Origin: Dendrobates tinctorius
Taxonomy: Eukaryota
Direction of reading: 5' to 3'
Length of the DNA: 64,000 nucleotides
Assembly (NCBI RefSeq): GCF_039654945.1
Contig: NW_027361830.1
Span: 1-64,000 of the forward strand
Part shown: positions 8,742 to 64,000 of the stretch, piece by piece
How the letters are laid out: each line of letters begins with the position of its first letter
Position numbering within the stretch: the stretch's first letter is position 1
Notes under the pieces: model-generated
What the model was told of the DNA's origin: nothing
Databases searched by the model: none
Seen by the model: the letters and a program-made list of their open reading frames with translations, nothing else
Position numbers and translations under genes: made by a program

Positions 8742-10161
8742 TGTGACGAACGACCCACCGACGTTCGTCCAAATACGGAGGCGACTAACGGGGGTCCCGC
8801 TGCCACCAAAACGCGACGGACAGCGGACCCTGTGTCACCACTATGTCACAGTCCCACCACTGACACGGGTGTATCAGCGGACGGAGGGACGAGACACAAT
8901 GCCGGCACACGGCTATCACAGGCACAGTTGGGGCTTATCTTAGTTATCCCACCACTGGCACCATGTGACAAAAATATCCAGCAAGCTACTCTCGCTCTAC
9001 AATTTGCCACAGGGGGAGTTTAATTTGGATGCCCCACCACTGCTATCAATCTTCCAAGTACTGTGGGGATTTATGTATATCCCACTTTCTCAGTTCCACT
9101 TTGGAACTCGCAGCTCTCCGGCGCCCCCCTTACCCTCAGGTCAGTCAGGGAACTGCACCTAGGATAATTAGTCACCGGACGGGCTGCCTGTTGTGAACCG
9201 GCAATTAGGCTTCTGCAGTAAGGGAATTATCAATGCTGTGGCCGCAGCCCCTTATTCAGCAATATAAGACCCTTCTGTACTGCCAGCAAGCTGCAATAGC
9301 CATACACAACGCGCTGCCACCAGTCACGGTTACTTAATTCACAGTGTTAAATTAAGAGGGTCCGTGGCAAACCCCTTGAATTAGTAGCGATTATCAAAGG
9401 CGTATAGTTCGATTCTTAGAACATGGAGACAGGCTAAATATTAAATCATTTATTTTCCGAAAGAGGACAGTGATTACAGATAAAAGTTGCTATAAAATTG
9501 AGACATAAAATATGTACATTAGACAAGTATAAAACAAAGTGGATGAAAGAAGAAGGTACACTCACATTTAGTCAGTTGTTAGGCATCCCATGTGGCTTTA
9601 AGGGGGGTGGAGGCGGAGCTGCACGTCTCCACTCATCTGGGTTCTGCTCAGCACGAGGATTGGAGCTCTTCTGAGCTGGTTTTGCCAGGGAATGCCTTAT
9701 AGACTTTCCTATGTGACATCACGGAGAGGTGCATTCTGGGTTGATCCCACCTCTCTCATCCAAGTTATGTTTTGGCTACAAAACTTAGATTAGCTATAAC
9801 TTTATGGGAGAAGCTGGTATGGACTCATCAGTGGTATCATGTTTCCCAGCGTAATGAGCCCATCAAGAAAACATCAAACATCTATGCGATATGACCGTCC
9901 ATTTGGGAACAAATCATATCTCATGTTCTGGACAGGGTAGAACTTCGAAAGATACGCGGTATCGAAGCTGGGACCGCTCAGGTTACAAAAATATGATTTT
10001 CATATCTCTACTTGGTACGGTTTTCGCAGGGCAGGCTCTTAAAGGTTTACTTCTAACTCCTCATTTCAAACAAAGAGTTTTCCTTTCCCGCACTTTTTTT
10101 TCCCTCTTTCAGCTGAGGCTGAGAGAGGCCAAATGGTGTGGCAGGAAGTTGATTTATAACA
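8742..10161 (-). mobile_element. Possible solo LTR inserted in the hAT element
   Basis: Minus strand begins TGTTATAA and ends GTCACA. A TATA-like site near 9697 is followed by AATAAA near 9450 on the minus strand. No target duplication found. Confidence 0.35.
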
Positions 10162-46260: not shown

Positions 46261-46559
46261 GAGGGCATCATCCACATCAATTATAGAAGGAGGATGGCTA
46301 TCAGCAGCAGGGAGGGGTATGGAGACCGCAGAAACCACCCCCATCAGAACAGACCAACAGGATTAACGTCCAACATGGCAGAACTTCAAAAGAAAGGGCA
46401 ATGGCTAAAAGAAAAAAATGTAATAGATGTCCTCTCTAGCTAATAATCTGAAAGATTTGACAATTCCACATATGCTGGAATAAAAGCAGATGAAGGGCAC
46501 AAAACAAGTTTGGAAATTGGTTAAAAAAAAAAAAAAAAAAAAAGACAATAGACTCTCAC

Positions 46560-46635
46560 CTAATCTCTGTGCAAAAGAACCAGAAGTTGTATCAGATTTA
46601 TCCCCAAGAATCAGCGAAGACAAAGGCATGGAGTC
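46560..46635 (-). CDS. PSMG4: PSMG4 exon 2 (76 nt)
   Basis: ttgtag|GAC TCC ATG...AGA TTA G|gtgaga; DSMPLSSLILGDKSDTTSGSFAQRL; phases fit exons 1 and 3. Confidence 0.95.
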
Positions 46636-52007: not shown

Positions 52008-52385
52008 GGCTGCGTGCACACGCTGCGGATTCCGCTGCGTTTCCGCAGCGTTTTTGGCCGCTGCGGACCCGCAGCAGTTTTAGCTGCGGTGTACAGTACC
52101 ATTCAAATGAATGGGAATAAAAAAACGCTGTGCCGACGCTGCGGAAAAATCCGCGCGGATTTGCTGCGGTTTTGAATCCACAGAAAGAATTGCATGTCAA
52201 TTCTTTCTGCGGAAACCGCTGCGGGTTCTTATCTCCACCATTGTGGAGATAGTGAATCCGCAGGACCAAACCGCAGGCAAAACCGCAGATAATCCGCAGG
52301 TCTTTGGACCTGCGGATTATCTGCGGTTTTTGCAAAATCCGTGCGGATTAATCCGCAGCGGATTCCGCAGCGTGTGCACGTACCC
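52008..52385. mobile_element. PIF/Harbinger-type MITE, inverted relative to the 1053-1400 copy
   Basis: TTA|GGCTGCGTGCACACGCTGCGG...CCGCAGCGTGTGCACGTACCC|TTA. Confidence 0.85.
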
Positions 52386-52519
52386 TTACAGTCTCTGCTT
52401 CTAACACCACACTCTCGTTCCCTGAAACTAATTGTCATCAGGTGGTAAAGATAGAAGCAGTGTGAGTAACAGCAGCCCCACCCCTGATGACAATTTGAGA
52501 GCTGTGGGGTGAAGCAGCG

Positions 52520-55008
52520 GTCACTCACACTGCTTCTATCACTGCTCTCAAATGAATCACCCTCAGGAGGCAGCACTGGTGTCACTCACACTGCTTCTAT
52601 CACTGCTCTCAAATGAATCACCCTCAGGAGGCAGCATTGGTGTCACTCACACTGCTTGTATCACTGCTCTCAAATGAATCACCCTCAGGAGGCAGCACTG
52701 GTGTCACTCACACTGCTTCTATCACTGCTCTCAAATGAATCACCCTCAGGAGGCGGCGCTGGTGTCACTCACACTGCTTCTATCACTGCTCTCAAATGAA
52801 TCACCCTCAGGAGGCGGCGCTGGTGTCACTCACACTGCTTCTATCACTGCTCTCAAATGAATCACCCTCAGGAGGCGGCGCTGGTGTTACACTGCTTCTA
52901 TCACGGCTCTCAAATGAATCACCCTCAGGAGGCGGCGCTGGTGTTACACTTCTATCACTGCACTCAAATGAATCACCCTAAGGAGGCAGCACTGGTGTCA
53001 CTCACACTGCTTCTATCACTGCTCTCAAATGAATCACCCTCAGGAGGCAGCACTGGTGTCACTCACACTGCTTGTATCACTGCTCTCAAATGAATCACCC
53101 TCAGGAGGCGGCGCTGGTGTCACTCACACTGCTTCTATCACTGCTCTCAAATGAATCACCCTCAGGAGGCGGCGCTGGTGTCACTCACACTGCTTCTATC
53201 ACTGCTCTCAAATGAATCACCCTCAGGAGGCGGCGCTGGTGTCACTCACACTGCTTCTATCACTGCTCTCAAATGAATCACCCTCAGGAGGCGGCGCTGG
53301 TGTTACACTGCTTCTATCACGGCTCTCAAATGAATCACCCTCAGGAGGCGGCGCTGGTGTCTCTCACACTGCTTCTATCACTGCTCTCAAATGAATCACC
53401 CTCAGGAGGCGGCGCTGGTGTCACTCACACTGCTTCTATCACTGCTCTCAAATGAATCACCCTCAGGAGGCGGCGCTGGTGTTACACTGCTTCTATCACT
53501 GCACTCAAATGAATCACCCTAAGGAGGCAGCACTGGTGTCACTCACACTGCTTCTATCACTGCTCTCAAATGAATCACCCTCAGGAGGCAGCACTGGTGT
53601 CACTCACACTGCTTCTATCACTGCTCTCAAATGAATCACCCTCAGGAGGCAGTGCTGGTGTCACTCACACTGCTTCTATCACTGCTCTCAAATGAATCAC
53701 CCTCAGGAGGCAGCACTGGTGTCACTCACACTGCTTCTATCACTGCTCTCAAATGAATCACCCTCAGGAGGCAGTGCTGGTGTCACTCACACTGCTTCTA
53801 TCACTGCTCTCAAATGAATCACCCTCAGGAGGCGGCGCTGGTGTTACACTTCTATCACTGCACTCAAATGAATCACCCTAAGGAGGCAGCACTGGTGTCA
53901 CTCACACTGCTTCTATCACTGCTCTCAAATGAATCACCCTCAGGAGGCAGCACTGGTGTCACTCACACTGCTTGTATCACTGCTCTCAAATGAATCACCC
54001 TCAGGAGGCGGCGCTGGTGTCACTCACACTGCTTCTATCACTGCTCTCAAATGAATCACCCTCAGGAGGCGGCGCTGGTGTCACTCACACTGCTTCTATC
54101 ACTGCTCTCAAATGAATCACCCTCAGGAGGCGGCGCTGGTGTCACTCACACTGCTTCTATCACTGCTCTCAAATGAATCACCCTCAGGAGGCGGCGCTGG
54201 TGTTACACTGCTTCTATCACGGCTCTCAAATGAATCACCCTCAGGAGGCGGCGCTGGTGTCTCTCACACTGCTTCTATCACTGCTCTCAAATGAATCACC
54301 CTCAGGAGGCGGCGCTGGTGTCACTCACACTGCTTCTATCACTGCTCTCAAATGAATCACCCTCAGGAGGCGGCGCTGGTGTTACACTGCTTCTATCACT
54401 GCACTCAAATGAATCACCCTAAGGAGGCAGCACTGGTGTCACTCACACTGCTTCTATCACTGCTCTCAAATGAATCACCCTCAGGAGGCAGCACTGGTGT
54501 CACTCACACTGCTTCTATCACTGCTCTCAAATGAATCACCCTCAGGAGGCAGTGCTGGTGTCACTCACACTGCTTCTATCACTGCTCTCAAATGAATCAC
54601 CCTCAGGAGGCAGCACTGGTGTCACTCACACTGCTTCTATCACTGCTCTCAAATGAATCACCCTCAGGAGGCAGTGCTGGTGTCACTCACACTGCTTCTA
54701 TCACTGCTCTCAAATGAATCACCCTCAGGAGGCGGCGCTGGTGTCACTCACACTGCTTCTATCACTGCTCTCAAATGAATCTCCCTCAGGAGGTGGCGCT
54801 GCTGTCACTCACACTGCTTCTATCACTGCTCTCAAATGAATCACCCTCAGGAGGCGGTGCTGGTGTCACTCACACTGCTTCTATCACTGCTCTCAAATGA
54901 ATCACCCTCAGGAGGCGGTGCTGGTGTCACTCACACTGCTTCTATCACTGCTCTCAAATGAATCACCCTCAGGAGGCGGCGCTTGTGTCACTCACACTGC
55001 TTCTATCA
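52520..55008. repeat. 61-bp satellite, about 41 monomers, with a 900-bp higher-order repeat
   Basis: Unit GTCACTCACACTGCTTCTATCACTGCTCTCAAATGAATCACCCTCAGGAGGCRGYRCTGGT; sequence lines 52921-53820 recur unchanged at 53821-54720. Confidence 0.97.
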
Positions 55009-55651
55009 CCGACGCCTAATAACGTCTCGTTTCAGAGAAAGAGACTGCAATGTTAGAAGCAGTGACTGTGACGGCGGTGATTGAAGATGGGGTCACTTCT
55101 CAATCATCTCAACAGAACCAGGTTCAGGGGACGGCAGTAGCTGCGATAAGTGACTACAGTGCCGCTGATGCCGTCCTGTTACAAGAGGGGGCAATAGTCT
55201 GCAGGGAGTGAGTGCAGCCCCAGCTTCCTATGACATCTCATTTGGGACTCCTCTCTGAACTGAAACAATACAGGAAGCAAAGTAAGAAAAACCATATAGG
55301 AAAAAGTGTTTATAACATATATATAGATAGATATTTATAAAGAGCTTTCAAGGTTTTGGACCACCCTCAGTCAGTGGGTTGTTCTGAAGGACCGACAGGA
55401 GACATTGTAACTCTTTATCTTTGTCTGAGATGATTTATGGCCACAAAAAAATCAAAGTAGAATTTGCTGTGAAGCAAGGAACCTGTAAAAGCCAACCGGT
55501 GCAAAATTTATAACAAAACCCAACAGCAAAAGATTATTTCAGCCCAAAATACATGTAATTAAGTTAAAAATAACAATCACTGCCCTCAAAAGGCGGCGGA
55601 GGATGACACGTTGGCCTGTATACACACAACCTCTATAGAACAGGCACTCAC

Positions 55652-55822
55652 AAATCTGCTGCACATGGCCACCGCCAGATTACACAGCCTGGCCGAGAAC
55701 CCGACCCACAGGAAGAAGCAGTCCTGCAGGCTCATGACGTGGAAGTGGACGAGCCGGTCACAGATCTTCTCACTGAAGTTGTGGATAGTGATGGGCCGGT
55801 GCGACAGCTCCATGGCTTCCAT
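55652..55822 (-). CDS. PSMG4: PSMG4 exon 1 (proteasome assembly chaperone 4; spliced protein 122 aa)
   Basis: MEAMELSHRPITIHNFSEKICDRLVHFHVMSLQDCFFLWVGFSARLCNLAVAMCSRF|gtgagt; convergent with SLC22A23, as in human. Confidence 0.95.
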
Positions 55823-55834
55823 GCTTCTTCTCTG

Positions 55835-55951
55835 TGGCCGGTACCCGGCTTCCGGTGACGTCACCGGGTCATAGTCTCCCTGTATGTGTGACACTTCCGC
55901 CCACAACAAATATGGCCGCCGAGGAAGTTCCCGGGATGGTATAGCGTGCAG
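55835..55951. promoter_or_regulatory. Compact CpG-rich bidirectional promoter
   Basis: ETS CTTCCGG abutting CRE TGACGTCA (55856-55863) within the palindrome CCGGTGACGTCACCGG; ACTTCCGCCC; YY1-like AATATGGCCGCC; donor-like CAG|GTACGA at 55952. Confidence 0.65.
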
Positions 55952-57776
55952 GTACGATGCGTGCGCTCCTCACGGTACGCCGAGCTGTCGTATGGAGTCC
56001 CGTCTGGAATATCTGGACAGGAGTCAGTCACAGCCCGCCATTTATGTGTATTAACGCTGCGCTAGGACACAGCCCCGGGTCCTTGTGAGTGGTGTTTTGC
56101 ACAAGAGCATTTGGTGGCGGATTTTGAGCCTATATGTGTTTAGCAGTTTGTTTTTTAGCCTATAAGCTTATAGTAAAGTGCCAGAATATAAAAAAAACTC
56201 CAATTCAGAGCGTGCCGGGGTGTGCAAGACACCAGGAACCCGCAATACTCCGTGAGGAAAAAGAAGCCCTAGGAGAAAGGCCGCAGCGCTTGTGGCGAGT
56301 CTCAGGTTTCTCTTATTGTCTAATAGCGTTTAAAAAAAAAGCCGGAAAAACCCAAGTTCGGCTCCTTTCACATGGTGCGTTTTTGCGGCTTTTTTTCTGC
56401 ACGTTTTCAGCTGTTTCACAGTAGCAGCAATGGCGGAGGTCTCCGAAATCTCATGCACACGTTGTTTTTTTTTTTCTCCTGACTGTTTTGTCAGAGAGCT
56501 GCGTCTTTGCAGAATGTCGCTTCTTTCAGTGTTTATTCAGCGCTTTTCGCCCATTCCCCTCCTGCGGAATATGTCGGCGCCATAGAAATAAAATAATTAT
56601 CATTGCTTTAGTGCAAAAAAAATGCAGGTGTCAGGATTTGCTGCGTTTTTGATGAAAAAAGCTGCTAATGCAGAACTAGATTTTTTTTTTTTTAAGCAAT
56701 AAACGTTATCAGCACGCACAAGAGACAAATGTGCCCTGGGAAAAACACTGAAAAAAACACAGCAAAACCTAAGTAAAACCTGCTTTTTTGTAAGCATCTT
56801 AAACACAGCTTAAATTTTACATTAAATAAATCCACAGCAAAAATGCAATGTGTGAACATAGCCTAAGGGAGGTGTAATGTGTGCAGGCTTTTTTTTTTCT
56901 TTTTTTGCATACAATAAGCAAATTCATGAAGATGGGTTTTCCCCCCAAATACTGGTGTAAAATACATTCAGATGTCAAAGTCAGTGAAAAACCCCAAGTT
57001 AACAACTTTTTTGGCCATGGTCTTCCCACGGAAAAATACTTGGGGGGAAAAAAACCCTGAAAAATGCAATGTTTTTTGTTTTTTTGTCCAAATTAAGGGA
57101 ACTTTTCATTGGTTTTCCCAATGCAAACTAAGGCCACCACTGTCAATACCTCTTTTACACCCATGTACCAGTCTGTACATAAATCCCCAATCCCTCTGAG
57201 TATCACAAAAAATGCCTTTTCTAATCCCCCAAATGGAGCGGTCCAGTCCAGTGGGCTTCTTTGGTCCTGCTTGGCGGCCACACAATCGCTTTTGTCCTGC
57301 CCTGCTTCATGTGGAGCATCTTATGACACTCTGAGGGTCTGTAATGGTCACGCATCACTGTCTCTTCCTCGGCCGTATAAGTGATCTATAGCCGGTGCGG
57401 GCAGCTCACGTCCTCTTGATTAACTATACATCTGATGGAGGGGCCCGTGACGCCAGTACTGATTGCGTGCAGGGCTCACGTGTCGTAACAAGCTCACGTG
57501 AGAATCGGGAACGCATGTGCTGACGCCGCTGGAACGCTTCCGGCCAGGAGATGCATGCAGGTGCTGTTATTTTATCATGTGGAATGAGGAGGGGTTGTCC
57601 TACTAGTAGACAACTCCTATAAGTCACTGAAGAATATCTATTAATATGAGATAACATTCCCCTGGCAAATAATTGAATGTTATTTTCGGTTACCTCTGAT
57701 AATTATTTGGTGTGTGTGTTTTTTTTTGTTTTTGTTTTTTTTTTTATATATATATCTAGGTCATTGAACAGCAGAT

Positions 57777-57884
57777 ATGGCGGGATATCATTCCTTAATC
57801 GGTTACCCCTGGATCATTGACTGCATTGCTAATTATGACAGTACAGCTGATAAGCAAAAGCCAGTCCCCGGTCAGGTAGTGGAG
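57777..57884 (+). CDS. First coding exon of an ACD/TPP1-like (shelterin OB-fold) gene; exon starts at 57760
   Basis: Long T-tract...ctag| acceptor, GATATGG Kozak, MAGYHSLIGYPWIIDCIANYDSTADKQKPVPGQVVE|gtaggt. The PWI...P..GQ..E pattern resembles the TPP1 N-terminus (from memory). Only 36 codons are visible. Confidence 0.6.
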
Positions 57885-58022
57885 GTAGGTTGTGTAAGAT
57901 TTCATGATTTGTTCCAAATAATTCGGACACGCAGCACAAGTAATGGTCTATGTACGTTCTCTTTCTTGACTCTCCTCCTTGTTACTGTGTCCAATAACGT
58001 GGCATACTACAACAACGCCTTA

Positions 58023-58960
58023 GGCTGGGTTCACACGTGGCGTTTTTTTCGCGTTTCCGCGGCTGTTTTAACCGCGTGATTTTGCCGCGAAAAATAAGCA
58101 TCCCATGCATTCCTATGGGATTCCGCAATGCTGTGCTAATGCTGCGGTTTTTACCGCGGCGGAATCGCTTCGCGGTAAAAACCGCAGCATGCTCATTAAT
58201 TTGCGGAATCGCGGCGATCCCGCACCCATAGGAATGCATTGTTCCACTTATTTCCCGCATGTGGCTGTGCACAACATGCGGAAAGTAAGCAGAACATTTG
58301 CGGATGGTACCCATGGTCCGGAGGAGAGGAGACTGTCCTCCGGGCTTTGGGTACCATATCCCTGTAAAAAAAAGAATTTAAAAATAAAAAATATTGTTAT
58401 TCTCACCCTCCGGCGTCCCGCGCAGCCTTCCCGCTTCTCTTCACGCTCCCGTTCCCAGTAGTCCTTTGCGAAAATGCCCGCGATGGCGTCCGATCTCGCG
58501 GGATCGTGAAGTCTCGCGGTCATTCGCGCGACGTCATCGCGAATAACCGCGAGACGTCGCGATCCCGCGAGAACTGACGTCATCGCAGGCATTTTCGCAA
58601 AGGATTACTGGGAACGGATGCGCGGGACGTCGGAAGGTAAGAATAACACCGTTTTTTATTTTTTTTTTTACATTTTATCTTTTACTATTGATGCTGCATA
58701 GGCGGCCTCAGTAGTAAAAAGTTGGTCACACTCGTCAAACACTATGTTTGACGAGTGTGACCAACCTGTCAATCAGTTCTCCAAGCGATGCTACAGATCG
58801 CTTGGAGAACGCTAGCATTTTGCAAGCTAATTACGCTTGCAAAATGCTAGTTTTTCCGCGGGAAAATCACGGGAATTTAAAATGCGATTTTCCCGCGGAC
58901 TGGAATTCCGGAATTCTCGCGGTAATTTCCGCGAGAGTTCCGGTACGTGTGCACTTAGAC
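58023..58960. mobile_element. TWA-target MITE with internal hairpins
   Basis: TTA|GGCTGGGTTCACACG...CGTGTGCACTTAGAC|TAA; hairpin TTGGTCACACTCGTCAAACA-CTA-TGTTTGACGAGTGTGACCAA. Confidence 0.75.
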
Positions 58961-59079
58961 TAATTGTTTTTATTGTTTTTTTTCTTTAGCAATAATTTGA
59001 ATCAGTTGAGTCATTCAAAACTTTATTCAGGCATTTCAGTAATGTTTTATATAACTTAATAAATTGGAGTAAAATTAAC

Positions 59080-61153
59080 TTTCTTTATCACTTCATTGGG
59101 GGACACAGATTACCATGGGTGTATGCTGCTGCTGCTAGGAGGCTGACACTATGCAAAAACAAGAAAATTGGCTCCTCCCCGGCAGTATACACCCACCGAC
59201 AGGCACCAAGAACCTCAGTTTGTGCTTAGTGTCTCTAGGAGGCGGACCGGGATCTTCCCAGATCCGCAGTTATGATTTCTTTTTCCTTTTAGGGTTTTAG
59301 TCAAATGTTTTTAATCTTTTCTCATTTATTTTTCAGGTTCACCGTCGGGAAACAGGGTGTAAGTACCACCCTGATTTCCCGTATCAGGCGGCTGAGCGAG
59401 CAGTGTGGTGTCACCCACATCGCAACTTTCAGTACCGCAGGCAGGACCTTTTCCCTATCACCCTCAGGTGCTATGGGCTGATGACAGGTGGCCGGTCCTT
59501 GCCAAAACACCTCCTCACCCCTCTCCCGAGACAGGGCTGAGAGGAAGACGGCGGTCGTCTGTGGTCACCTCCTTCTCTTCTAGCAAGAGGTTAACACCGT
59601 CTTCTGCATGATGCGGGTAAGAGGACCTTTCCCAGCGGCCTGCCTTCTACGCATGGGCCCCTGTGGTCATCCTCTTCAGGGACGTCAGGTAAGACTCTGA
59701 ACGATCCCTCCAGCCCCGCATGTCTCAGGGAGCACCTTCAGTTTCATTCTCTTTTTGAATCTCCCACCCCTGCCAGCCGCGCGCCTCATCCTCAGCCGCG
59801 CACTTTTCTATGCAGGGGGACACATCAGCCGGTGATTACACACTCGGGGGGGGGGGGGGGGGGGGGGGGGCTTTCAGAGCGTTGTAAGCGCAAGATCACC
59901 TTTATATATCGGCGCCGCAGGCATCTTATCTTCTCGGTGTAGAAACTCAGGCGGGGAGGAGACCGCGTTACTTTCACTTTCAAAAGGCTCCTTCCTCCCC
60001 GCTCTGAGCGCGCTCATTTCCACTATCTGAGCGCGCTTTTTTCGCGCTCTTTTTAGCCCATCACAGGGCGCCTTTATCTTTTGGGGCGTCAGCTCCCCTG
60101 CTTACAGCGCCCCTCCGCTGTCTTTATCCAACCATGCTCTGGCGCTAAGCTCCTCCCACCGAGTTCGTCAGCCAGCTTCCTCTGCAACTTTTCTTCACTT
60201 CCTGCGCTGCTTGGGGATACTTCGGCGTCCTGCTGCTCGTCAGATTCTCGGTAGGTTCTGCTTTGAGGCTCAAAATTGGCTCTCCTCTGCAGTTTCCTCC
60301 CTATTTCGTGCGGCCATACGGCGCAGCCTACCTATGCTCAACCCTTCAAGGGTTCTCAGTTTTAGACCCACCGCTACTCACTACGCCTGTGCACGCTGTA
60401 AAAAGAAGTGGGCATCAGGTCAGTCGTCTCCCTTCTGCCCGTCCTGCAGCCCTTCAGCTATGTCGGCCTCTCAGGAGCACACAGATTCCTGGGAGGAGGC
60501 CACTCCACCTCCCCCCTAGAGTGGGCCGTTGCAATGTCTCAGTCGGTCTCTGATCTGACTAAAGTCTGTCAGTCCCTGGTTCATGTCCTAGAACGTTTAC
60601 CTCAACTATCTACAGCCACCTGTGTGCCGACCGCCTCTCACGGTGAGTCGCCCACACCTGACCGCGACCTTCAGAGGGACAGACCAGGTGGGAGTTCTAG
60701 GAAGCGGGCTCTGTCTAGCTCATCCTCCAGCTCGCGGGGCCCTTCTGCTTCACCCAGGTTTCCGTCTCCTTCTTCAGAAGACGACCTTAGGTCAGACGAC
60801 GATTCCCAATCGGGATCTAGTTCAGAAGCCGATAACATATCTAAAACACGGGACATGGTCGATAGTCTCCTTTCGGCTATCTTTCAAACCCTTGAAATTA
60901 AGCAAGATAAGGCCCCTCCTCAGGAATGTTCTGTCCCCTTTAAACGAGCAAGGCCTCCATCCCAGACCTTTCCAAACCACAAAGAGTTCGATACTACACT
61001 ATCCAAACATTGGGAGCACCCTGAGCAACGCTTTTCAGGCCGCAGGTACTTAGATGTGCTGTACCCCTTTGATGTGGATTTGCTCACAAAATGGACCAAA
61101 GCTCCCGAAGTGGATCCTCCTGTTTCTCGCATAGCCTCTAAGACGGTTATATC
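59080..61153 (+). mobile_element. Second DIRS-type element, 5' part, interrupted by hAT
   Basis: TTT-initiated end (TTTCTTTATCACTTCATTGGGGGACACAG), GC-rich leader, and a gag with CxxC-CxxC finger and YPF..W..APEVDPPVSR motif. Confidence 0.75.
60334..61153 (+). pseudogene. DIRS gag-like ORF, frameshift at the C-run near 60512, truncated by hAT
   Basis: MLNPS..CARC..CPSC in ORF 60211, continuing as PLEWAVAMSQS...SKTVIS in ORF 60408. Confidence 0.7.
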
Positions 61154-61600
61154 CAGGGTGGATTTGATTTAAATCTGATTTAAATCACGATTTAAATCAC
61201 TAGTCAGTAAGGCTTGATTTAAATCAGTGATTTAAATCAAAGTTTCTACCTAAACTAGTTCTTGCTACTTTAACATGCAAGTAGATGAAGATTTTTAGAA
61301 TCACTTTTTATTACTTTTTTCTCCCCAGTTTAATGGGTTAATCATTCATATTTGGACACCACTGTTCTGTTGTACTTAGGAAGGAGAAAAAATAATCCTG
61401 ACCTTAATAACAATTTAAATAGATTTATTCAACTGAAACAATAACAACATTACAGCATAAGTTATTTGCTTAAACAAACATCCATGTTTGTTAACTAATT
61501 TGGCTAAACAAAATATATATATATTTTAAGAAACTTAGACTGTCAGCCCAGCCGACACATGAAAAACTTAAATACTACTGTCCCTGCTGTCCTCTGTACC

Positions 61601-63231
61601 TCACTTGTCGTCATCTTCATCATCATCTTCTTCTTTGTTCCTATTCATAATCTGGAAAAGAAAAACAAGCTTTCCTGCTTTATTGGGTCCCAACCGATTT
61701 CTCAATTTAGAATGAATGAGTCCAAAGGAAGAGAATATTCTTTCAACGCCTGCAGAAGAAGCTACTGCTGTTAAAAGTGAAATCATTACTTGAACAGTCT
61801 CTAAATCCAAGCGCTTAAGTGACTTCCACCAGTTTACTGGTGTGACCTTCCTTAAAATATCTTCAGCAAACATATATTTCTTGAATGGTTCCCCCTTAGC
61901 TCTGAAGTTTATTATAGTTGGCATTAAAGATGGATGATTGCTGGATACCCATGTCATAGCTAACTCCTCTTCCTCAGCACTTAGGTTTTGACCCTGATAT
62001 TGGATATTGACAATATTTGCCAAAAAATGAGCTGGAGTCAGTGCTTGTCCCATTCGTTTGTTTACTGCTTGTAATTTAATTCTGTCCATGTTTAGTTCTG
62101 TTTTTAAGTGTTCACTCAGTTCCTTCCAAATTTCAACAGCATCCGCAATAAAACAGCTATTTTTCTGTATTTTGTTTAAAGCTTGAGAGATGGGTTCCAG
62201 GAAGCTCAGCATATGTTCAACATTTCTCTTAAGCCCAATGTTGAGGATTTTGGCCGTGACAGTGCCATCTATTTTATCTCGATTTTCTTCACAAAGTGTC
62301 ATCAGAATAGGCCAGTTTTTGATATACTGCTCAAAACAGTCCACCACAGAGTTCCATCTAACATCTTGTGGGAGCGTTAGCTTGGTTCCACCCATCCTTT
62401 TCAGAGCTGCTGCAGCAAAATGATTATTACGGAAGTATTTAGCATTTTCAACAACATTAGCCTTTATTTCTGGAACACTTAAGTCTTTGGCTAAGAGGTG
62501 CAGCAAATGAGCACTGCAACCATATGTTATTAGCAGCTTTGTATTCCCTCCCTGCTCTTCTAAATCTCTTCTCATCTTGGATACGTTTGCAGCATTGTCA
62601 GTGACCAAACTGCGTACTAGACATTTGAATTTTTGTTCACATGTCGTTATAGCTTTTACTGCCACTTCTTGTAAGTATTCTGCTGTGTGTGCATTTCCTG
62701 ACGTATCAGTTGTTTGTGCAAGGAAGACTTTACCTTCTTTTGTTGTTATACAAGCACATACAATAGGATCATTGTGGACATTACTCCAACCATCAATACT
62801 TAGGTTAACAATTTTACCCTCCAGAGCTGTTGCACATTGCTCCATTTCTCTGTCATACACTTGATCCAGCAGTTTCCCTGCAACATCAGCTCTGCTGGGT
62901 GGACTGTATCCTGGTCTCAGTGACTGAACCATATTAATGAAATGTGGGTTCTCAGTCAGACGGAAAGAAGAGTTCGTTGCATAAATAAACTGGGCAATTT
63001 TTTCATCAATCAACTCTTTTTCTAATCTGCTAGTTCTTATCACAAACCTATCTATGGTGGTTCCAGGAGGTAAAGGTTTTTTCTTCCTTTTGGGTGATGG
63101 TGATATGTGGCTGTGGGTGTCTGATGATGATGCTGCTAATGAAGCACTATCCTGGATGGATAACTCTGAAACTGTAGAACAGGATGATGGTGATCTTGGA
63201 GGTGGATAGTTTCCAGAATCCATGAATTCCC
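61601..63231 (-). CDS. hAT transposase exon 2 (DDE and dimerisation domains)
   Basis: SIDGWS (D), VTDNAAN (D), CSAH (CxxH), VRWNS, SSAGVERIFS (E); acceptor tttag| at 63231; no stops. Confidence 0.92.
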
Positions 63232-63484
63232 CTAAACAAAAAAAAGTTTCCAGAATCCATGAATTCCCCTAAACAAAAAAAAGTCAATGCTGTTATTTTA
63301 TTGTTTATACAATTTCTGCTTATTGTACACAACACATCACTGCCCCTGCCCCAAAAGGAATATTTGTTTTTCTTCATAACTGTACCAAATGACAGTAACA
63401 TGCAGTAATAATAAGAAATATAATTTTTCTCACACATGACAGTTCAGTCTTTAGAAATAGGATTCAATAAAAATGTTTACCAAC

Positions 63485-63686
63485 CTGAAGATCCTGCCTG
63501 TTCAGAAGTGTTTCTTTGGTCATCTTCATCACTGCACTTCTCATGATGTTGCCTCATTCGCGCCACCAGGCCTTGCATCTCTTTGTTGCATCGTTTGCAT
63601 TTTGCACGCATGCCTGCCTTAACGATAGGCGAAGGAGCTTCATTAAAATATTCCCAAACTGGGTCTCTTTTACGGCCTGCTGCCAT
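63485..63686 (-). CDS. hAT transposase exon 1 (BED zinc finger)
   Basis: MAAGRKRDPVWEYF...AKCKRC...MRQHHEKC; donor TCAG|gttggt in phase 1 joins exon 2 in frame, giving 610 aa. Confidence 0.85.
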
Positions 63687-64000
63687 TATAAGGAAAGAAT
63701 GTAATAAACCTCAGATCGTACACACAAACAGATCCAGACTTGTCTGTCTGTGGCTATGCTGCAGTATTGTGCTCAAAGTTTCACTTTCATTTTCTTGTCT
63801 GCTTGCCCTTCCTCCTCCTCCTCACACTTAGATTCACATTCTTCTTGTGTTGTGCAGATCTATTCCACTCCAAACAATCAGAAACATATTGTCTAACTTC
63901 TTGGACTTGGCACTGAAGGGGTTGCTTCTGTATTCATAGGTTTGTAGAACAATAGGATTAAGGTCTTTTTCTCAACTCTGTTCATGTTGTAACATTTTTG

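Follow-up and report, generated by a model that had tools for sequence, protein, structure and literature searches.

Within shelterin, TPP1 is the subunit to which POT1 and TIN2 bind, and it recruits telomerase. The human and mouse protein, encoded by ACD (TPP1, also PTOP/PIP1/TINT1; PDB 7QXA chain O, 2I46 and 7TRE), shares its architecture with the frog protein considered here, with an N-terminal OB fold (PF10341), a POT1-binding region, a disordered linker and a C-terminal TIN2-binding motif in the same order. The arrangement of OB, POT1-binding and TIN2-binding regions is conserved in vertebrates, including amphibians, which a survey of metazoan shelterin covered (PMC8653790), and there is experimental work on Xenopus shelterin (Vizlin-Hodzic et al. 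2009, cited in PMC8653790). Human TPP1-S begins at Met87, a start also used in rodents (10.1101/626523), and the human OB domain's N-terminus (NOB) touches TERT in its TEN and IFD-TRAP parts (PMC10055720). Amphibian TPP1 is already known, and the ACD protein of Dendrobates tinctorius is already in RefSeq.

The window analyzed here is a 64,000-nucleotide stretch of D. tinctorius DNA. Its positions 57763-57884 very probably constitute the first coding exon of the canonical, single ACD gene of this species, which is oriented divergently to PSMG4 in what is the normal anuran arrangement. The exon lies on the plus strand and comprises a short part of the 5′ UTR (57763-57776) followed by 36 codons, from the ATG at 57777 to 57884, that end in phase 0 and read MAGYHSLIGYPWIIDCIANYDSTADKQKPVPGQVVE. 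It is preceded by a pyrimidine-rich tract of 50 nt closing in an AG acceptor at 57761-62 (57712-57762, plus strand) and followed by the splice donor GTAGGT (57885-57890, plus strand). The initial annotation had proposed a TPP1-like exon at 57760-57890, a span that brackets the true exon correctly, and its peptide is correct.

These limits are also those of the transcript evidence. Public runs were searched with 55560-57960, and four of them, X1 and X3 from organism A and X6 and X7 from organism B, were compared with 55500-61499. The runs are Logan contigs tagged 'RNA?', a label that is itself a guess, and we treated them as RNA because they are spliced. In all four, a single contig matches exactly the interval 57763-57884, starting at 57763 and stopping at 57884, and contains nothing else of 55500-61499. 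The contigs of organism A carry no mismatch in the exon (614 nt in X1, 3454 nt in X3), and those of organism B carry two each (2744 nt in X6, 3339 nt in X7). The exon occupies contig positions of about 32-172, behind 31-50 unplaced nt that derive from another exon, and the contigs continue after it for up to 3.3 kb with sequence from elsewhere. Because the match is exact and internal and the remainder of each contig maps elsewhere, 57763-57884 is a spliced internal exon; it is spliced and expressed, and is more than a chance open reading frame. A short non-coding exon precedes it. Spliced contigs of up to 3454 nt that contain the exon exactly show it to be part of the mRNA.

The identity of the encoded protein emerges from full-length homologs. 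Alone, the 36-residue peptide matches neither Pfam nor the PDB sequences, because it is too short, and a word-indexed protein search with the 100-residue read-through frame (region 1-40) returned zero candidates, by a method blind to full-length proteins. An exhaustive phmmer search of the peptide against 1.84 billion protein representatives identified two proteins that start with it. The first, P0001 (351 aa), is 100% identical to the exon over residues 1-36 (E 2e-16), and cluster look-up names it XP_073406224.1, 'adrenocortical dysplasia protein homolog isoform X2 [Dendrobates tinctorius]'. The second, P0002 (676 aa; 83% identity, E 5e-11), is the ACD homolog of Dendropsophus ebraccatus. Ten other matches, internal and split into several stretches at unrelated positions, were taken as noise. 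Both proteins exceed the cut-off of 26.5 bits for the Pfam TPP1/ACD family PF10341, with 72.9 bits for P0001 and 78.4 bits for P0002. The RefSeq entries of the D. tinctorius gene, XP_073406222-4, include a 684-residue isoform X1 (P0013), whose residues 1-36 match the window with 100% identity at 57777-57884 (tblastn). The exact N-terminal match, together with the same spacing of 1955 bp to PAC4 (PSMG4), links the exon to this full protein, of which the window holds only 36 of 684 residues, the OB-fold exons lying outside this DNA.

Comparison of the long isoform with human TPP1 (7qxa_O) extends the assignment along the protein. The whole-sequence match has an E value of 2.6e-28 (HMMER); residues 1-386 align on human residues 1-369, residue 1 on residue 1, a range that takes in the region behind the OB fold which binds POT1. 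The frog segment at the start of this alignment runs from 'magyhs' to 'pgqvve', with a 3-residue gap included. Near the C-terminus, residues 636-679 align on human 406-449 with an independent E value of 2.3e-06 and the pattern DG..FQY.Y..P...LCA.V.A...P..L..WA, which corresponds to the TIN2-binding tail. P0002 gives the same result against the human protein. The identification as ACD/TPP1 is therefore upheld by the identity of the exon to the N-terminus of P0001 and by the Pfam score of that protein, and the resemblance to the human TPP1 start that had been proposed (MAG, PWI, GQ..E and a 3-residue gap) is reproduced by the HMMER alignment. The gene is, on the other hand, not 'hidden' as had been supposed, since NCBI RefSeq carries it as an adrenocortical dysplasia protein homolog.

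The short isoform, a prediction, differs from the 684-residue form over its last ~30 residues and has neither the linker nor the TIN2-binding tail. As a genuine product, P0001 would be a TPP1 with no means of attachment to shelterin; just as well, it may model a transcript that retains an intron or is terminated by a transposon.

The 36 residues make two contributions to the protein. The exon provides the ACD start codon, equivalent to human Met87, the start of TPP1-S, and it forms the OB fold's N-terminal edge with the invariant PWI. P11, W12, I13 and Y20 stay unchanged throughout an alignment of seven frogs with a crocodile, a turtle and a bird. By position, the region corresponds to the human NOB, and by analogy it may contact telomerase in frogs as well. 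Judged from its homology, frog ACD would be expected to localize to telomeres, bind POT1 and TIN2 and recruit telomerase.

On the other side of the intergenic region lies PSMG4 (PAC4), whose first exon occupies 55651-55953 on the minus strand, with a coding sequence at 55822-55652, as indicated by translation, Pfam and transcript contigs. Its 57-residue peptide matches the Pfam PAC4 family (2.7e-05), and contigs from the same runs stop at 55651, the end of the exon, and extend to at least 55953. The annotated PAC4 gene of D. tinctorius encodes 122 residues, and its coding start stands 1955 bp from that of ACD, in the window as well as in the annotated record. The head-to-head placement of the two genes in the initial annotation is thus borne out, with PAC4 on the opposite strand directly upstream of ACD in both. 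A candidate for PSMG4 exon 2 (DSMPLSSLILGDKSDTTSGSFAQRLG...) is present at 46546-46635 on the minus strand, downstream of exon 1 by ~9 kb. Repeats have lengthened PSMG4 as well; among them, a tandem array at ~52200-54300 encodes repeated 'TPAPPPEGDSFES' open reading frames.

The same pair is found across frogs. In annotated loci of six anurans, PAC4 lies on the opposite strand directly upstream of the TPP1 gene; these species range from Discoglossus and Xenopus to Bufo and dendrobatids. The distance between the coding starts is 1.2 kb in Xenopus laevis, 1.7 kb in Nanorana parkeri, 1955 bp in D. tinctorius, 3.3 kb in Ranitomeya imitator, 4.1 kb in Discoglossus pictus and 9.9 kb in Bufo gargarizans. 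No PAC4 was found within 10 kb upstream of ACD in Dendropsophus; given the spacing in Bufo, it may sit beyond that distance. The adjacency of PSMG4 and ACD is an old, order-wide feature of frogs that is not specific to Dendrobates, and nothing marks the gene as an extra copy. PAC4 of X. laevis is annotated with 133 residues and a coding start at 8780 (L002 1-8780), and the region homologous to Dendrobates PSMG4 exon 1 lies at L002 7562-7422; the additional residues at its N-terminus may come from an extended annotation.

A persistent divergent pair invites the explanation that one shared bidirectional promoter drives both genes and accounts for their conservation as neighbors. The retention of the divergent orientation in six anurans and the short distances in X. 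laevis and Nanorana are consistent with this idea, which we nevertheless consider unlikely. The Dendrobates intergenic region contains two distinct CpG-richer patches, 55800-56100 and 57300-57600, ~1.4 kb apart and separated by an AT-rich, repeat-bearing stretch. CpG observed/expected is 0-0.3 in 56800-57200 versus 0.84-0.88 in 57300-57600, a patch that carries two CACGTG boxes and is a putative ACD promoter on the plus strand. This patch probably holds both the ACD promoter and the short non-coding 5′ exon, for which 57498, 57395 and 57561 are candidate donors. Across species, the coding-start spacing is variable, reaching 9.9 kb in Bufo, with PAC4 more than 10 kb away or absent in Dendropsophus, which argues against an obligatory shared promoter. 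Nor did the intergenic regions of distant frogs show conservation: comparison of the Dendrobates sequence with Xenopus, Nanorana and Dendropsophus revealed no conserved promoter block apart from the 24 nt directly before the ACD ATG, which match Dendropsophus weakly. Within the same region, the contigs of organism B (X6 and X7) omit 235 bp at 56246-56482, where the ends, AC..TG, do not resemble splice sites. The gap has the look of an indel between organisms A and B, and a repeat was probably inserted in this genome.

Outside frogs, the neighborhood of ACD is different. ACD adjoins a CARMIL gene and no PAC4 is present in the annotated loci of a loon (Gavia stellata) and a turtle (Mauremys reevesii), matching the human order CARMIL2-ACD-PARD6A. 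Open reading frame peptides from the bird and turtle loci, used as queries, detected no exons of CARMIL or of a short-chain dehydrogenase in the flanks, 10 kb each, of frog ACD. Scattered matches in those flanks, intronic or upstream, were taken for transposons, and long open reading frames in the downstream flanks resemble transposon frames. The view that frog ACD occupies a position unlike that of amniotes thus agrees with the bird and turtle loci. The proposal of a 'relocated' ortholog holds in part: the difference from amniotes is ancient and frog-wide, because the pair recurs in six anurans and the CARMIL neighbor in both bird and turtle, and a recent or species-specific move is contradicted by the same six anurans.

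The consistency of this difference, six anurans against two sauropsids, could also reflect hidden paralogy, in which frog ACD (in a SLC22A23-PSMG4, 6p25-like block) and amniote ACD (beside CARMIL2, in a 16q22-like block) would be reciprocally retained copies from the genome duplications of early vertebrates. Human 6p25 and 16q22-24 share the paralogue pairs FOXC1/FOXC2, TUBB2A-B/TUBB3, IRF4/IRF8, SLC22A23/SLC22A31 and CARMIL1/CARMIL2, which would suit such an origin, as would a frog-crocodile ACD identity of only 26% over full length. TPP1 evolves fast, however, so that low identity is uninformative, and both groups share one exon structure and a start of the Met87 type. Two ACD genes occur in no species listed, and both copies would have had to survive from the duplications up to the separation of amphibians and amniotes, with reciprocal loss afterwards. 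We regard this history as improbable; if true, the shelterin subunit of frogs and mammals would be the 'same' by name and not a moved ortholog.

Copy number points in the same direction. Apart from isoforms, one named ACD gene is found per species in ~29 anurans, and likewise in sauropsids, in a count of annotated proteins (word-indexed search, 0.55-1.75 times the query length) rather than a whole-genome scan; no second divergent copy appears among them, and D. tinctorius ACD is probably single-copy. The initial annotation had offered an additional TPP1 paralogue as its alternative, from the single point that the position is unlike the human one. Such a copy, confined to the Dendrobates lineage and leaving the 'true' ACD in place next to PARD6A/CARMIL2, is scarcely credible against the same PSMG4-ACD pair across Anura, one named ACD per species, a protein that retains the OB fold, POT1-binding region and TIN2-binding tail, an NCBI name of ACD homolog and, as weak evidence, no mention in the genome of a further locus for ACD, PARD6A or CARMIL2.

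Beyond the canonical ACD exon, the window is occupied by the start of a repeat-filled intron (57885-64000, plus strand) that runs off its end. The donor at 57885 is spliced across this transposon-swollen intron to exons past the window end. The downstream OB-fold exons that had been sought are not found within the window: tblastn of P0013 matches residues 1-36 only and reveals no further ACD exon in 57885-64000. The four runs contain no second piece of the ACD contigs in 57885-61499, which puts the next exon at a greater distance. The intron that follows the 36-residue exon measures ~900 bp in Dendropsophus versus more than 6.1 kb in Dendrobates.

The description of this intron as loaded with a MITE, a DIRS and a hAT element stands for two of the three. 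A high-copy repeat block lies at ~58020-59300, with contig depth in the thousands over 57900-59300, and contains a palindromic MITE-like element without assigned strand (58363-58672; nested inverted repeats I1, I2 and I7). All four transcript-type runs show many joints and loose ends in 58000-59300, and the MITE-like repeats of this interval are abundant in transcripts genome-wide. An intact hAT transposase frame of 540 residues lies on the minus strand at 61601-63223, with Pfam matches to DUF659 (1e-11) and Dimer_Tnp_hAT (1.1e-07), both above cut-off. The open reading frame at 60408-61169, the proposed DIRS, has no Pfam match. The ACD range of R. imitator also contains a called 511-residue DUF659 gene, which points to recent activity of a hAT family in dendrobatids.

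The importance of the locus is largely that of housekeeping: this is an ordinary, annotated gene of a kind already included in published shelterin comparisons, and the PSMG4-ACD pairing can be read from any genome browser. Our literature search on PSMG4-ACD synteny found nothing relevant, and Myler et al. 2021 does not analyze synteny. The pairing could serve as a synteny marker, and it raises a small question about the ancestral arrangement. The unaided reading of the DNA did correctly recognize a 36-residue exon of a fast-evolving protein.

Set against human TPP1, the frog protein combines conserved landmarks with differences. The PWI at residues 11-13 is kept in both, and the acidic 'EDEHF' of the frog aligns with 'EEKEF' of the human TEL-patch loop, at an identity of only ~30% over the OB region. 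The frog linker is longer, with a protein of 684 aa versus 458 aa in the human PDB chain, and frog ACD has no upstream extension like residues 1-86 of human TPP1-L. The genomic neighbor is PSMG4 in frogs versus CARMIL2 and PARD6A in human.

Among amphibians, the closest counterparts are the Xenopus laevis 'telomere end-binding protein PTOP' (P0040) and the other anuran ACD proteins, which are orthologs with 39-92% identity, and Dendropsophus has the same 36-residue first coding exon as Dendrobates. The genes themselves differ far more in extent, ~16-fold among the species compared: the ACD range is ~138 kb in D. tinctorius, 104 kb in Ranitomeya, 62 kb in Bufo, 50 kb in Discoglossus, 40 kb in Nanorana, 36 kb in Dendropsophus, 33 kb in the turtle, 18.7 kb in X. 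laevis and 8.4 kb in the loon. The Dendrobates gene is thus far larger than its counterparts in X. laevis and Dendropsophus because its introns are filled with transposons, and the locus shows how introns are inflated in a giant dendrobatid genome.
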